The translations under genes and the position numbers were made by a program. The notes beneath the pieces are model-generated. The model did no database searches, was not told the DNA's origin, and was given only the letters and a program-made list of their open reading frames with translations. A DNA stretch of 64,000 nt from NCBI GenBank assembly GCA_029953675.1, contig JAMWBK010000010.1, positions 744,001 through 808,000 of the forward strand. The letters run 5' to 3'. This stretch comes from Rhodosorus marinus CCMP1338. Taxonomy: Eukaryota > Plantae > Rhodophyta. Positions 21,673 through 61,661 of the stretch are shown one piece after another. Within the stretch, counting starts at the first letter, position 1; the number at the start of each line of letters is the position of its first letter.

Positions 21673-23335
21673 CCTTTCCTCTCCAAAGAAATACCGGAAA
21701 ACTCTCACTAGTCACAAGGTATACACAATCTACGGCAACACAAAAATCCAAACCACGTTCATTCACACTCTTCCCAACCAGCCCACGCTCCCAAACTGCT
21801 CCCCCTCGACGATCGTATAGTCTGTTATATAGGCCCCAGCTCCTCCCTCATCAGCAAGGAGTAACAATCAGACATTTTCTTTGGTCCAAAAAATCTCCAC
21901 TCCGAACAACCCCTCCTAAGAACACCCCATTAAATTTTCAATAGCTACAAATCACAAATAAAATAAGCCTTATTGAAAAACCTATCTACTTGCAAATACC
22001 CCCCTTCCAACCTCATCGTTGATTAAAAGGTTCTTGTAATCGTACCAAAATTAAGGCCCAACAAGATGAATTTTGATCTTGAGGGGGGTTCCATATTCCC
22101 AGAGCGTAAAACAGTATACAGCGAAAAAACAATGGCCTTTTGAGTAATCCCTGCAAATGAAGCATTAACAAACAGGGGTTCTCCTGTGACGCAGAAAGTC
22201 AGTTGGAGAATGATAATTCATTTGACCCCCCCTTATGATCTGCTCGCATGCAGAGGCTGTTCCCGTTCGATGCCTGGATAAATATATATTAATCAAGAGG
22301 TCGGAGGCGACCACCATCAAGTCGGGCAGCCTGGAGCCAGTCCAATACCACCCCTCCCCCTCGGGTGTAATTGGTGTGAAAAAGGAATCTTCACGGTCGG
22401 CTTTGATTTCCAATTGTTTTGTTAAGTATCGAGGAAATCCTGCGGCTCGGCTTCTTTCTTTTATCCAGTTATCGTCCACAGAACATAAATATTACTTTAT
22501 TATGACAAATTTTCAATAGTAGTCGATAGGGAAAATCAACTAAAATATCCTTAAATGTGGAATTTTTTTCCAAGTTCTTTAAATAGGTTGACATCTTTAG
22601 ACTGGATTCTGATGGAGGTTGGAATAATCTAAAGGAAAATTGCAATAGTTCCTAAAACTTGACCGATTAAGCAAAACTACCCAGATTGAGAATTTTGGTA
22701 GAGGATGAGTTCTTGAAATAGGTTCACCGGTGGGTGGCCTGCCCCGACAGCCTCTTTGGAGACGACATGGTTTGTACTGTGCGTCCTGAGCAGTGGTTGC
22801 TCCCCTACTAGCAGCAAGTACTCCCAAGCAATAAGTGATAAATCAAGGAGCCTGGTGAGAGCGGGAGCACAACATCATCAACACGCCGGCTTTTTCTAGA
22901 ATTGTACGCAAGGTGCTGACTCGAATGGATTTGGTGGCAGTCGCGGAACGCACTTGTCAAAGCTCTGTCACAGTGAGGGAGAGACGCTCCTCTAAACTTG
23001 ATATGATTGAAAGCTGGCTCACAAATTCTCAAGTGTAGGGACCGCGTGCGCAGGGTGAAGCCGCATCAGTAGGAAGAATTTCGAGCTGGGCCGGAGCTTT
23101 AGGAGTCTATCAAGTCGATTCGTAGTAAGCCTTCTGCTTTTCTGTATGCTGATGTATCCCACAGATTAGCTGCCCCTGAGCAGACAATCATGGAATACAT
23201 CTGCTAGCGGTTTATTTGTTCTTAGTCTTTCCTGTTCTGCCTATGCTGATGATCGAGGAGCACCACATAGTGCGAACCAGGAAACTGCGACGCGGTCCAG
23301 CTGAGCCAAGTCGAGGCGCACCTCAATTCTCAGAG

Positions 23336-24073
23336 ATGCTCAGGTACAGGATCATTGCGGCGATCACCCGCGATAGCAGAGGGATTGGAAAGGATGGGGT
23401 TATGCCATGGCCCAAACTGGGCGCGGATATGAAGCATTTTCGGGAGCTCACAGTGGGCGGCGTTGTTATCGTTGGCCGCGTTACCTTCGAGAAGATTGGT
23501 GTCTTGGAGAACAGGCTCAACGTGGTTCTTTGCAGATCACGAAATGAATACCGAGGGGAGAATCTGATCGGCGCTCGTTCACTGGAACAAGCCGAGATGT
23601 TGATCGGGTCTAGAGGTACGCATATGTGTTGAGTAAACATCAGAAACGGAAACTAATACTCACTACAACGTGACTCGCGTCTTCGCGCTGTCCGCCAATA
23701 TTTGCATCTCGTTGAAGACGCGCTAAACGTGATTGCCACTTTCCACACCTTGACGCCCGCCAGGATTTCAAGTAGCGAACATTATCGGGGGTCAATCAGT
23801 CTACAAGACGGCCTTTGAAGTTCCAAGATATAGTCAAAGACTGCACCTCACGGAAATAGAAAACTCGTACGAATGCGACAGGTTCTTCCCGGCGTTTCAC
23901 GATCACCAAAAGGTTCGACACCTCCCGAGAGCTGTCCAATCATCACTTACTCAAATATTTTGACTAGTGTTCGACATATGTCTCCTAAAACTACTATTAT
24001 TCAGATATTTGAGTCCGTACAGCATGAAGAAAACGGAATAAGATTCACATTTTCGGAATGGGAGGCTCGGTAG
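23336..24073 (+). CDS. Monofunctional dihydrofolate reductase, 165 aa, 3 exons
   Basis: Exons 23336-23615, 23764-23912 and 24005-24073 total 498 nt in frame. Motifs IIAA, GIGKDGVMPW, ADMKHFRELT, VGRVTF, NRLNVVL, IIGGQSVY, LTEI...CDRFFP, NGIRFTFSEW. Stop codon follows directly; no TS domain. Confidence 0.9.
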
Positions 24074-24383
24074 TTGCAGAAGGTGACAGTTATTTGGCAA
24101 GTTTGGCCAGCTTCTAGAAGCAAATATTCTTTGTATTTTTTAAATTGTGCGTTTGAGGGTAGAGGTTAGTATTTAACTAGAAGCTTAAGTGTCACTGCCC
24201 GGGTCTTGGGGTGTGGATACATAAGTACTGGTTCGTCGACGATCGAGCGAAGAGGGAGGAGGTATAGGCAGGTTCTTGGGTAGGTCTTGGAGGTGTATGT
24301 GACTTCTGTCTGGTTTAAAATAGATACGTAACTTCAGTACAGAAGTTTCTTGAAGTATACTTATTGTTGAGGTTTGTCTTGCT

Positions 24384-25631
24384 ATGACGGAGGAAGTTCA
24401 TTCTGAGACGAGGATGCCCGAGGAGATGGAAGGTGCCATCCCTATGGACGAGGAAGACGTGGTTTTGGACGAGCAAAACTGCGAAGTTATTGAGCTGAAC
24501 GAAGGTGACGGTGTAAATGATCACGATGATATGGACGAGGATGATGGGGAGGACGGTGAGGGGAGCCTTGACGAGCAGATTGATGACGATGTGGAGCCAG
24601 AAGCTGATGATACCATGATAGATCTGGAAGGGCACACTGAGTCCGTGTTCTGCGTAGTCTCATCACCCTCTGACAATAACGTCGTGGCTAGTGGTGGAGG
24701 CGATGACCGCGCGATTATTCACAACCTGAGGAACAACGAGGTGCAGGCCCAGATTCAGGACTTTGGGGACTCGGTCAGCGCCATTGCATTCAACCAGGAT
24801 GGAAAGCTGGTCGCGTTTGGAGGCATGAATGGAAGGATAGTGGTCGTTGATGTGGCCACCGGGAAGCCAGTTTACGAGCCAGAAGGGCCCGCAGCTTCCG
24901 TTGAATGGCTAGACTTTCACAGCCGCGGCAATTGGCTCATAGGAGGAAGCGCGGATGCTTTTGTGTACATGTGGAACGAGAAAGGAGAGAACGCTATGAT
25001 ATATTCGGGGCACGCGACGATCGTGTCTTGTGGTGGCTTCAGCCCAGACGGCCGCAGCATTGTCACGGGCTCGGAGGATGGCACGGTTCGCATTTGGAAT
25101 CCGAAGACCGGGGAATGTGTTGCCACCAGCGCACCAGCCAATTCAGAAAAGCCCGGCGTTTTATGCATGGATATGATGGACAACATCGCTATCGTGGGCT
25201 ACGAGGATGGGTCTGTTCGACTGGTCAATCTGTCGGATGCCGCCTTCATTGCTTCACTTCCCAGCCACGCTGGGAGCGTTGAGTGCGTCAAGTTTGGGGC
25301 ACCGGGTCTAGTGCCAAAGATATGCGCATCTACTGGGATGGATGGCGTGTTAAGGATCTGGGACATGGACCTGTCGAGAGAGCGCACATCTCTGGTACAT
25401 GGTGCAGGAGTGGTTGCTTGCAGTTGGCACCAGCAGAAACCCGAGCTTATTATCACTGCCAGTGTGGACAGAAAGGTTCACGTCTGGGACGCGAGGAAGG
25501 GGGAGCACGTCGCTGTTTTTATGGGAAATCGGAACACGATTCTGTCCATGGACATTGGCCTCACGGGAGAATATGTCGTGACAGGCAGCGATGATCACCA
25601 TGTGAGAGTATTCAATCTGTACCAGGCCTAA
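24384..25631 (+). CDS. WD40 protein, SQT1/AAMP-like uL16 (Rpl10) chaperone
   Basis: Intronless 415 aa; acidic N-terminus then LEGHTESVFCV...VASGGGDD and WD repeats ending GSDDHHVRVF. Confidence 0.85.
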   Translation: MTEEVHSETRMPEEMEGAIPMDEEDVVLDEQNCEVIELNEGDGVNDHDDMDEDDGEDGEGSLDEQIDDDVEPEADDTMIDLEGHTESVFCVVSSPSDNNVVASGGGDDRAIIHNLRNNEVQAQIQDFGDSVSAIAFNQDGKLVAFGGMNGRIVVVDVATGKPVYEPEGPAASVEWLDFHSRGNWLIGGSADAFVYMWNEKGENAMIYSGHATIVSCGGFSPDGRSIVTGSEDGTVRIWNPKTGECVATSAPANSEKPGVLCMDMMDNIAIVGYEDGSVRLVNLSDAAFIASLPSHAGSVECVKFGAPGLVPKICASTGMDGVLRIWDMDLSRERTSLVHGAGVVACSWHQQKPELIITASVDRKVHVWDARKGEHVAVFMGNRNTILSMDIGLTGEYVVTGSDDHHVRVFNLYQA

Positions 25632-25938
25632 TCGCTTTCTGGCCGTACTCGGGAATCGCGTTCTTAGCAACTCGGCGGGTCCGGACAAAAGCGAGACTCG
25701 TCTATCGGATGGGAATCAGCGTGATGGTTTTTTAGCGTTCAATGTACAAAATTGTGTACTTAACATCGTTATCTTAATGTACAGTAGCAGCGATTTCAAC
25801 TCACTTAATAAACTCTTGTAGTGCCCGATGGGGTCCCAAACTTTCCAAAAATGTATCGCCCAGGCAGAAGAGAAAAAAAGTCAATCGCTAAAAGGGCGTC
25901 GCGGTTGCTTGGTTGATCAATGGTGATACCCAAAGTCG

Positions 25939-27264
25939 CTACTCGCCCATGCCACGTCCCGCGAGAAAGCCAGTGGTCCACGCTCCTTGAAGGTTGAACC
26001 CTCCAGTAATGCCATCGTAGTCACAGATTTCTCCAGCAAAAAACAAGCCGGGAACAATCTTGCTTTGCATTGTACGCATGTCAATTTCCTTTAAAGGTAT
26101 GCCACCGCTCGTAACGAACTCTTCCTTGAACGCGCCTTTTCCTTCTACCGAAAATCTACACTCGTGAACTTCTTTCGCGAGCTTTCGCATTCCGTCGTTC
26201 TTGAGTTCCGCCCACGGACATTTCTCGTTCACTTCCGCCCTTCGGAGAAGCAACCTCCACAACCTAGCAGGAATGGCGCGGTACGGTGAAGCGCTCCCAA
26301 CCAACCGCTTCTGACCTCTTTGTCTTCGAAGGTCTTCAAACAGATCCAGAGTCTTCGCTTTACTCGTTTCCGGATACCAATCTATGTTCAGCCCCACCTG
26401 GTATCCGAGCTCCTTCAAGATTCTTGCCCCGAACGCGCTCAGTCGAAGTATCGCGGGACCTGAGAAGCCCCAGTGCGTAATGAGAGTCGGGCCTCTCTGC
26501 AGAAGTCCAGAATCTTGCCTCCGACGTCCAGTCCCTTTCGGTAAAACCAAATTCACCACCGTGTTCCCGACACTGACGCCTGCGAGCTCGTGAAGTTCTT
26601 TATCCTTAATCTTGAAAGTGAACAGGCTCGGAATGGGGGAAATAATGCTATGTCCCAACTGCTCCGCCCAGCGATAGCCCAGTTTGGAGGATCCAGTCGC
26701 AATGAGGACCTTGTCACAGTTCTCTGTAACCGGCGTTCCAGCTGCGCTTTTGAACACCACGCTGAATGGATTCTTGCCATTCCCAGTGGAGATATCTGTT
26801 ACTTTCGTTGATGCCGTCATCTGGACCCCGGATTCTCTGGCTGCTCGAACCAGAGCGTCCACGATCGTTGAGGAATCATCAGTAACTGGAAACATTCTTC
26901 CATCTTCTTCAGTCTTCAACTCGACGCCGCGGTTCTTGAACCATTCCACAGTATCGGCAGCATCAAATCCAGAAAAGGGTCCCCTCAGCTCCCTCCTGCC
27001 TCTTGGATATCCTCCTGACAGTGTCTCATGATTGAATGCAGCATGAGTCGTATTGCACCTTCCTCCACCGCTAATCCTTACCTTGTCCAAAAACTCCTTT
27101 CCGCCCTCCACGATTTTCACCCTCGCCTTCCCCCGCGCGGCACATTCTATCGCCGCGAAGAAACCAGCGGCCCCTCCACCCACGACGATCACCTTGTTCT
27201 CCGCAGAAATTCGGGATCTTATCCTCTTCGGATCCCAAACATTCAGTACAAAGGATACCATCAT
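25939..27264 (-). CDS. HI0933/YhiN (BaiN-like) NAD(P)/FAD-dependent oxidoreductase, probably plastid-targeted
   Basis: Intronless 441 aa; VVGGGAAG, KVRISGGGRCNTT, TEEDGRMFP, TLITHWGFSGPAIL, VTSGGI, GLFFAGEICDYDGITGGFNLQGAWTTG. Confidence 0.93.
   Translation of the reverse strand: MMVSFVLNVWDPKRIRSRISAENKVIVVGGGAAGFFAAIECAARGKARVKIVEGGKEFLDKVRISGGGRCNTTHAAFNHETLSGGYPRGRRELRGPFSGFDAADTVEWFKNRGVELKTEEDGRMFPVTDDSSTIVDALVRAARESGVQMTASTKVTDISTGNGKNPFSVVFKSAAGTPVTENCDKVLIATGSSKLGYRWAEQLGHSIISPIPSLFTFKIKDKELHELAGVSVGNTVVNLVLPKGTGRRRQDSGLLQRGPTLITHWGFSGPAILRLSAFGARILKELGYQVGLNIDWYPETSKAKTLDLFEDLRRQRGQKRLVGSASPYRAIPARLWRLLLRRAEVNEKCPWAELKNDGMRKLAKEVHECRFSVEGKGAFKEEFVTSGGIPLKEIDMRTMQSKIVPGLFFAGEICDYDGITGGFNLQGAWTTGFLAGRGMGE

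Positions 27265-29227: not shown

Positions 29228-29295
<68 letters not shown>
29228..29295. repeat. (GA)n microsatellite, about 34 units
   Basis: Direct reading; lies in the G-rich region upstream of the septin. Confidence 0.97.
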
Positions 29296-43759: not shown

Positions 43760-45881
<2,122 letters not shown>

Positions 45882-46421
45882 ACTTCTTGCTTAGGTTTGA
45901 AGAAATGCTGGCTGCCCCTTCGTGACATGTGTTGTTTGTCCTGGTGAAGACTGATAGAACTCCGTAAATTAAAACTCGCTTTCCCCCTTACAAAATCTCA
46001 AACGACCTCCGTCGGACAAGCAGCATGTACCATATAACATATTAACAGTCAGCCCATCCTTGGTGTCCCTAAATATTTGCAGCAATTGTAATTTAAGAGT
46101 CACTGTCCACAGATCAAAAGTAGGACCACACCAGGCCTCTGAAACCGTTATTTTGAGGCCTTTCAAATTCTAAGCATCTTGACAAAATTTTATGCCTCTA
46201 GATGACCCCGCATGGGTCCACTGGGAAGCATTGTATGATGACACTTAACGTGTGTTTCGAGCAAATTTTTTTCGAGGTCAGAAACCATTGTCTTCAGCGG
46301 CTGTGAGGATTCAAAAATGGCGACGGGATGGACGCGTGCAACGACGGATGGGTTCTGGCTATGAACTCATAAGGATATTCTAAGAATAATGGAGGAGTGC
46401 AGGAGTGAAAGTGGCTGGAGC

Positions 46422-61212: not shown

Positions 61213-61661
61213 GTAGGAAATTACAAGATATTCTTCTAAAGAAGCCTAAGGGACCTGCTACGACCTCGGCCTTCTTCCTTACTCCTGACTCGGATATCCG
61301 ACATACTGCAAGCAAAGGGGGGCAGTCGCAGTATGTAGGAAACTACCAGATATTATTCTAAAGAAGCCCCCCCAGAGGACCAGAGGGACCCTTGCTATCT
61401 CCTTGACCTTCTTCCTCACGCCTGACTTAGATATCGGACATACTGCAAGCAAGGGGGGCAATCGCAGTATGTAGGAAATTACCTTCTCAAGAAGCCAAAG
61501 GGACCCTCGCTATCACCTTGACCTTCTTCCTTACTCCCGAATTGAATATCGACATACTGCAAGCAAGGGGGGCAATCGCAGTATGTCAGGAAAGTACCAG
61601 ATATTCTTCTAAAGAAGCCAAAGGCTTGCTCGCTATCACCTTCACCTTCTTCCTCACCTGA
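61213..61661. repeat. Tandem array of about 3.6 diverged copies of a 114-136 bp unit
   Basis: Copies start near 61213, 61335, 61471 and 61585. Conserved blocks GTAGGAAA, AAGAAGCC, CCTTCTTCCT, ACATACTGCAAGCAA-G run-GCA.TCGCAGTAT. Confidence 0.92.

Follow-up and report, generated by a model that had tools for sequence, protein, structure and literature searches.

A stand-alone dihydrofolate reductase gene in the red alga Rhodosorus marinus, very probably derived from an ancestral DHFR-TS gene by partial duplication

Dihydrofolate reductase (DHFR) is encoded separately from thymidylate synthase (TS) in opisthokonts (PMC6451014, PMC3351787). In a survey published in 2019, all algae and plants analysed encoded a bifunctional DHFR-TS, which was single-copy in the algae (PMC6451014). 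The fusion has been regarded as a rare genomic change suitable for rooting the eukaryote tree, and both this use and the doubts about it have been discussed (PMC3351787). An inactive, inhibitory paralogue of DHFR-TS has been reported for Brassicaceae (PMC6451014). The current study deals with a 64-kb stretch of the genome of Rhodosorus marinus CCMP1338, a unicellular member of the red-algal class Stylonematophyceae (assembly GCA_029953675.1, 1.69-Mb contig JAMWBK010000010.1, positions 744,001 to 808,000; hereafter, the window), which contains a small stand-alone DHFR gene (NDN08_003958) and a gene for a fused DHFR-TS (NDN08_003966; Table 1). A preceding reading of the letters alone, without database searches (the sequence-only reading), had proposed that the former was split from the latter by a partial local duplication. 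We conclude that the small gene is, very probably, a real, expressed and selectively maintained stand-alone DHFR that arose by partial duplication of an ancestral DHFR-TS at the DNA level.

Judged by domain, fold and residues, the small protein belongs to the DHFR family; since it has no fused TS, it stands outside the bifunctional DHFR-TS class, yet it is descended from that class. With the red-algal fusions (NDN08_003966 and those of Gracilariopsis chorda, Compsopogon caeruleus and Porphyridium purpureum) it shares the fold and the catalytic residues as well as the motifs PWP[KR]L and P-x-[WY]-S-x-R, and its best outside matches are found there; with the DHFR-TS genes of the Rhodosorus type it also shares the positions and phases of both introns. 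Unlike the red-algal fusions, it has neither a linker nor a TS nor an N-terminal extension, it lacks four residues of a loop, and it is only 36% identical to its neighbour. The bacterial FolA enzymes (~160 amino acids [aa]) are likewise monofunctional and of similar length, have a short alphaC-betaC loop and reach 30-41% identity and template modeling (TM) scores of ~0.85-0.88 to the small DHFR, which differs from them in the two spliceosomal introns that it has in common with a eukaryotic fusion, its red-algal signatures and its conserved eukaryotic neighbourhood. Human DHFR and yeast Dfr1 are, like the small DHFR, stand-alone enzymes encoded by intron-containing nuclear genes, but the latter is secondarily separated from a fusion and does without the longer loops of the vertebrate DHFRs (165 versus ~186 aa). 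Arabidopsis DHFR-TS3 (cited in PMC6451014) is comparable as an extra, diverged paralogue beside an active fusion; in contrast to the one-domain small DHFR with all its catalytic residues, it is a two-domain, inactive protein that lacks a C-terminal motif and acts as an inhibitor of its sister isoforms. In a literature search of incomplete coverage, no earlier account was found of an algal stand-alone DHFR that derives from a fusion.

The argument for this descent begins with the introns. The small protein is homologous to the DHFR domain of the neighbouring fusion (BLASTP, E 1e-31), and the homologous region has the same structure in both genes, the DHFR domain of the fusion containing only two introns. 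The first is a phase-1 intron that splits, in both genes, the codon of a glycine located nine residues ahead of the second G in IGG (G/FQVANIIGG in the small gene versus G/VDVAYVIGG in the fusion), and the second is a phase-0 intron after a lysine, with 19 residues to the conserved [WY] in the last strand (K/IFES...SEW versus K/ISLS...VEY). The correspondence had been read from the letters, down to the GTTCG with which both second introns begin and the ATA that follows them, and it was borne out in codon and phase. Both sites and phases are identical in four genes, i.e., the small gene and the fusion of R. marinus and their two counterparts in a more distant relative (see below). The chance of two exact matches in position and phase by independent gain is estimated at ~1e-5, from (2/555)x(1/554), and at less than ~1e-3 with a strong proto-splice-site bias. 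Since the introns were retained, the template of the copy was DNA rather than mRNA. They are not a general plant feature, because the DHFR-TS of the moss Physcomitrium has a single DHFR-domain intron at another position and none at the Rhodosorus sites. The red-algal fusion genes that could be read (P0200, P0202 and that of Porphyridium) are intronless and therefore cannot date the shared introns.

The gene model of the small DHFR, ending in a stop codon without a TS, proved to be exact. Its product corresponds to the C-terminal 165 residues of NDN08_003958 with 100% identity, and a tblastn search of DHFR-TS against the whole window revealed no TS similarity near the small gene. DHFR_1 (PF00186) is the sole Pfam domain and covers the protein nearly in full (104.5 bits with a cut-off of 25, E 5.9e-30, profile positions 4-158 of 159). 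An annotation of the gene as one for a DHFR-domain protein already exists, with the product name "hypothetical protein" at NCBI. A transcript contig of a related Rhodosorus strain (L002, JGI 3300017118) aligns to positions 22789-23616, 23762-23912 and 24003-24217 of the window and is spliced exactly at both predicted introns; its 3' end at ~24217 lies ~144 nt past the stop codon and short of the next gene. The transcriptome from MMETSP contains a complete open reading frame (ORF) of 164 aa with 85% identity to the small DHFR, and spliced transcripts are known in two related strains. Comparison of the window with L002 yielded 0.077 nonsynonymous (dN) and 0.31 synonymous (dS) substitutions per site, and the dN/dS ratio of 0.25 is indicative of purifying selection. 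A lack of expression with a ratio near 1, which the sequence-only reading had named as speaking against it, is not what was observed, expression being seen here in related strains. Another contig from the same JGI data set (L003) uses an acceptor of intron 1 located ~46 nt upstream (window ~23718-23763), which cuts the product short at 96 aa (P0004) and probably represents non-productive alternative splicing.

The start codons of the NCBI models appear to be less supported in both genes on sequence comparison, the small DHFR being 31 aa too long and the DHFR-TS 30 aa too short. The NCBI model of the small DHFR comprises 196 aa and begins at the upstream in-frame ATG at position 23243 (P0001). 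Since this ATG is followed by an in-frame TGA in L002, the 31-aa extension is not conserved and the start of the 165-aa protein is favoured; for this start, the earlier statement that no targeting peptide is visible holds. The 5' leader of the transcript is 78% identical between L002 and the window and unusually long for a coding sequence of 0.5 kb. No convincing ORF was found on either strand of this leader (22789-23335), which may be regulatory or may reflect an assembly merge with a neighbouring transcript. With respect to the fusion, the 524-aa model, which had been correctly recognised and contains DHFR_1 and Thymidylat_synt, is identical to the NCBI protein (P0401) from M31 onward, and the complete MMETSP transcript ORF of a DHFR-TS (P0402) has the same length, with a DHFR domain that is 93.5% identical. 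The N-terminal 30 residues that the NCBI model omits are conserved in P0402, and the fusion of the more distant relative (P0095) likewise has a long N-terminal extension. Judging from its composition, the 30-residue extension may serve as a presequence for an organelle.

When the small DHFR was compared with 1.84 billion representatives in an exhaustive phmmer search, only the Rhodosorus orthologue ranked below E 1e-30, and no orthologue outside this group was revealed. The next four matches (P0199-P0202), with 106-114 bits and identities of 44-49%, represent fusions of the red-algal type or fragments thereof: P0200 and P0202 are full DHFR-TS proteins, and P0199 and P0201 are shorter sequences close to P0200 that have the Pfam DHFR domain only. 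Only red algae figure among the named sequences nearest to P0200 (Gracilariopsis and Gracilaria, 63%; Porphyridium, 58%; Compsopogon, 56%; R. marinus, 55%). The best bacterial match (P0005), which sits in a thyA-folA operon, scores ~94 bits and is thus level with the neighbouring fusion. The motif [WYF]S.[RK][VILA]..T is present in 47 of 49 red fusions, in all three Rhodosorus-type fusions and in two of the four small sequences (that of the window included), and it is absent from all 196 stand-alone sequences and all 61 green and other fusions. PWP.[LI] occurs in 45/49 red fusions and 4/4 small sequences, compared with 15/196 stand-alone sequences, 1/61 green or other fusions and 0/3 Rhodosorus-type fusions, and a one-residue PW-x insertion is common to the small DHFR and the red fusions. 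Five other high-scoring matches of the search (P0203, P0204, P0206, P0207, and P0209; 329-379 aa) carry two tandem DHFR_1 domains per polypeptide, an architecture that to our knowledge has not been described.

The affiliation was also assessed by four-cluster likelihood mapping with our own script, which combines a Gonnet-derived rate matrix with a four-category gamma distribution; mean weights are reported, and the main mapping opposed the pairing of small sequences and red fusions to the alternatives with green fusions and bacteria. When the bacteria were chosen on the fusion, the small sequences of the R. marinus type were joined with the red fusions with a weight of 0.75 (88% of the quartets) and with bacteria with a weight of 0.12. 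The small orthologue of the more distant relative, on which no sequence set was selected, gave 0.94 (98% of the quartets) and 0.04 with the same bacterial set; with bacteria not selected on the query, the bacterial grouping named in advance as an argument against descent from the fusion thus received just 0.04-0.12. In a neighbour-joining (NJ) tree of 88 taxa based on maximum-likelihood (ML) distances, the small sequences and all red fusions formed one clade (41.5% bootstrap for the exact bipartition), and the small clade itself was recovered with 99%; its sister was exclusively red-algal in 64% of the bootstraps and exclusively bacterial in 24%. The sequences lend moderate support to an affiliation of the small DHFR with the red-algal fusions. 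The sequence-only reading had expected a grouping with the neighbouring fusion, and this stands with respect to red-algal fusions in general, not for the neighbour specifically.

Insight into the age of the gene came from a 121-aa fragment (P0244; 51% identity, query residues 3-96, corresponding approximately to exon 1), which led to contig L012 in the Logan assembly of SRR22824290. The rebuilt small gene of L012 encodes a stand-alone DHFR of 175 aa and has the same two introns and a stop codon without a TS; next to it, on the downstream side, are a WD40 gene and then an HI0933-like gene in the order and orientation seen in the window (24384-27264), the contig being collinear with positions 23339-27120. 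The same data set contains a separate DHFR-TS (L008), whose DHFR domain is 59% identical to that of the R. marinus fusion and whose two DHFR-domain introns are located at the same two sites. Since this fusion is by far closest to the Rhodosorus fusion, its sequence indicates that the alga behind SRR22824290 is probably another stylonematophycean. The separation of the small gene predates the split of the two algae, because the relative has the orthologue and a fusion of its own, and both lineages have kept both genes. Between them, the small DHFR is less conserved (51% identity) than the DHFR domain of the fusion (59%). Gene order is maintained around the small DHFR and not on the downstream side of the fusion, where DUF6823 genes of L008 (3195-3838, minus strand) have no counterpart in the window from position 45900 onward.

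The sequence comparison further indicates that the duplication is old and not recent, since the two copies are just 36% identical and their flanks are without similarity. A recent segmental duplication was considered and found to be without evidence in the flanks (20-27.5 kb versus 40-49 kb). The term "local" that had been applied to the event is consistent with the spacing of 20.4 kb, which has a probability of P ~0.0013 under random placement in the 31.19-Mb genome with its 8392 genes (PMC10250338); the flanks and the tree, in which the two Rhodosorus-type copies pair in 3.5% of the bootstraps, do not add to it. The term "fission" is likewise correct in part. A DHFR-only copy exists, but the fission is partial because the fusion has been retained, and no stand-alone TS was found within the 64-kb window. 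The event is ancient and conserved, a partial fission and not a recent local accident.

The small protein was compared with E. coli FolA in alignment numbering, the E. coli reference having been checked against the Protein Data Bank (PDB). All four small orthologues retain D27 (D31 here), W22, F31, I50, L54, and R57 (R60 here), so that the substrate-binding aspartate and the arginine pointed out in the sequence-only reading are both present. R44 and T46 of the NADPH-binding site, I94-G95-G96 and T113 are also kept in all four, and Y100 is replaced by F in L012 only. A four-residue deletion distinguishes the alphaC-betaC loop (EKIGV----LENRLN, aligned with an ungapped stretch of 15 residues; codons 51-62, window 23486-23521) and removes the position of E. 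coli R52. It is present in 4/4 small sequences, in 0/49 red fusions and in none of the green fusions examined. This loop lines the cleft for the p-aminobenzoyl-glutamate moiety in DHFR. A comparably short loop is found in 43 of 196 stand-alone bacterial DHFRs, and because it is so common there, the deletion need not alter the activity. An AlphaFold2 model of the small DHFR (68 sequences) reached a predicted local distance difference test (pLDDT) score of 96.4 and a predicted TM score (pTM) of 0.90. The top PDB matches in Foldseek were all DHFRs of bacterial, animal and plant origin, including the Arabidopsis DHFR-TS (8dae), with TM scores of 0.85-0.90 and root mean square deviations of ~2 Å. 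The protein starts directly at the first beta-strand and has no N-terminal extension.

Several results weigh against descent from the fusion or against parts of this reading. When the bacteria were the top matches of the query itself, the R. marinus-type small sequences were joined with red fusions with a weight of 0.45 and with bacteria with 0.37-0.38; in a control, the genuine Rhodosorus fusion was treated in the same way and gave 0.55 and 0.35. The specific pairing of the small sequences with the Rhodosorus-type fusions obtained, besides its low bootstrap value, a mapping weight of 0.19-0.30. Depending on the small sequence used, mapping within the red algae yielded 0.27-0.52 for the pairing with other red fusions and 0.18-0.54 for that with bacteria. 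Long-branch effects are likely, since both Rhodosorus copies are located on long branches. An NJ tree of 268 DHFR domains with Kimura distances placed the small clade among the stand-alone sequences with ~0% support and was dismissed as uninformative. A ranking by group profile hidden Markov models, in which the stand-alone profile came first (161 bits versus 148 bits for the red-fusion profile), was dismissed as circular, the stand-alone set consisting of the query's own top matches. The length of the small DHFR and its short alphaC-betaC loop resemble those of bacterial enzymes. Comparison of the two loci at the nucleotide and the translated level revealed no similarity beyond the DHFR exons, and the timing and the local origin are deduced from introns and proximity, not from trees. 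Finally, the upstream in-frame ATG could add 31 residues to the small DHFR in the sequenced strain.

Some of these observations would be expected if a bacterial folA had been transferred horizontally into the Rhodosorus lineage and had gained two spliceosomal introns later. The 165-aa length and the short loop are as in many bacterial enzymes, the top PDB sequence matches are bacterial, the unsupported Kimura tree and the biased profile score lean towards stand-alone sequences, and bacteria preselected as best matches attain 0.37-0.38. Such a transfer is nevertheless very unlikely, considering that both introns match those of the fusion in codon and phase in two species (chance ~1e-5 to 1e-3), that fusions of the red-algal type or their fragments make up the four best outside matches despite the much greater number of bacterial DHFRs, that the orthologue of the more distant relative gives 0.94 for red fusions and 0.04 for bacteria, and that the red-specific WS.R motif is missing from each of the 196 stand-alone sequences. 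A relic of a monofunctional eukaryotic DHFR older than the DHFR-TS fusion, kept in this lineage only, would be stand-alone and short as well, and the weight of 0.54 for the unrooted quartet that joins the small sequence with bacteria and the Rhodosorus fusion with other red fusions is expected of an old divergence, but also of long-branch attraction. This explanation is extremely improbable in view of the grouping with red-algal fusions apart from green fusions and bacteria, the shared red-specific motifs and PW-x insertion, the lineage-specific introns that are present in the fusion and absent from that of the moss, and the lack of an orthologue outside the group in the exhaustive search.

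That the small gene is a decaying partial duplicate or an annotation artefact without function is scarcely credible. Multidomain genes commonly have truncated partial duplicates, and the NCBI product name is uninformative, but the ORF is intact in four lineages across 49% amino-acid divergence, the catalytic residues are conserved, dN/dS amounts to 0.25, spliced transcripts exist in two related strains and the gene neighbourhood is maintained. A more serious alternative, though still an unlikely one, accepts the same origin and assumes a change of function after the separation, i.e., a preference for other, unconjugated pterins or for non-glutamylated or oxidised folates, an antifolate-insensitive bypass, or a modulation of DHFR-TS. 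The loss of the four loop residues, including the position of R52, in all small orthologues and in no red or green fusion would fit such a change, as would the faster divergence of the small gene compared with the DHFR domain of the fusion in the same species pair (51% versus 59%) and the precedent of the regulatory, inactive paralogue in Brassicaceae (PMC6451014). Its plausibility is reduced by the retention of the catalytic Asp, the NADPH-binding Arg and Thr, Arg57, Leu54, IGG and Thr113, by the undistorted DHFR fold of the predicted model, and by the short loop of those 43/196 bacterial-type enzymes that are ordinary DHFRs; a dN/dS of 0.25 is compatible with any conserved function.

According to the preferred reading, an ancestral bifunctional DHFR-TS would have been partially duplicated at the DNA level, neither by retroposition nor through acquisition from bacteria. 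The copy would have retained the first two exons and the beginning of the third, along with both introns of the DHFR domain, and would have acquired a stop three codons past the last DHFR strand, the parent fusion remaining intact ~20 kb away. This would have happened before the split of R. marinus and its relative, whose fusions are 59% identical in the DHFR domain, and the copy would then have evolved somewhat faster than the DHFR domain of the fusion and lost four residues of the loop for the folate tail (p-aminobenzoyl-glutamate). Activity, substrate and location of the small protein are predicted from its sequence: the product would be an active, NADPH-dependent DHFR without a presequence, probably cytosolic, and its reduction of dihydrofolate, or of oxidised or salvaged folates, would not depend on thymidylate synthesis. 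It is reasonable to infer a division of labour between an at least partly organellar fusion and a small cytosolic enzyme.

The locus exemplifies that a separate DHFR gene can originate from a fused-gene marker, and it outlines a route to reversal, in which a partial duplication comes first and the "unfused" state would be mimicked once the parent is lost. For folate biochemistry, the genome represents a natural experiment as well, since it contains a DHFR domain that is released from TS, and probably also from targeting to an organelle, with a small deletion in the loop for the folate tail. If the function did change after the separation, the lineage would be an intermediate towards the reversal of DHFR-TS, a character once held to be practically irreversible, because the fusion has been retained. 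The significance is moderate, partial duplication being an ordinary mechanism and the DHFR domain of the gene having been annotated before.

Table 1. Positions of the DHFR genes and adjacent features in the 64-kb window
Feature	Position	Strand	Description
Small DHFR gene	23336-24073	+	Three exons; 498-nt ORF; 165 aa; ATG 23336; TAG 24071-24073
Small DHFR exon 1	23336-23615	+	Codons 1-93 and first base of Gly94; GIGKDG, PWPKL, catalytic Asp31, GRVTFE, Arg60
Small DHFR intron 1	23616-23763	+	148 nt, phase 1, GTACGC..CCAG; removed in transcript L002
Small DHFR exon 2	23764-23912	+	IIGG, Tyr106, red-type PRYSQRLHLT motif, Thr123, CDRFFP
Small DHFR intron 2	23913-24004	+	92 nt, phase 0, GTTCGA..TCAG, then ATA; removed in transcript L002
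Small DHFR exon 3	24005-24073	+	Last beta-strands and TAG stop; no linker, no TS after it
5' leader of small DHFR transcript	22789-23335	+	At least 547 nt, unspliced; upstream in-frame ATG at 23243; L002 collinear from 22789
WD40 gene	24384-25631	+	L001 annotation
HI0933-like FAD-binding gene	25939-27264	-	L001 annotation
DHFR-TS gene NDN08_003966	43760-45881	+	Seven exons; 524 aa; DHFR_1 and Thymidylat_synt
DHFR-TS exons	43760-44171, 44265-44422, 44536-44741, 44828-44990, 45073-45228, 45315-45554, 45642-45881	+	Gene model
DHFR-TS N-terminal extension	43760-43849	+	30 aa; Arg/Ser/Ala/Gly-rich, no acidic residue
DHFR-TS DHFR-domain intron 1	44172-44264	+	Phase 1
DHFR-TS DHFR-domain intron 2	44423-44535	+	Phase 0, GTTCGT..GCAG, then ATA

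According to the locus tags, seven genes are located between the small DHFR and the DHFR-TS. With respect to the latter, the ORF of an MMETSP isoform of a related strain (P0086, window ~44500-45881) begins within intron 2 and comprises the TS and the last DHFR strand only; it may be an unspliced precursor, though it would amount to a TS-only product. No tRNA genes were found across the window. A perfect (GA)34 microsatellite is located at positions 29228-29295, and a 115-bp tandem repeat with 2.3 copies and an 84% match is present at 61380-61657.

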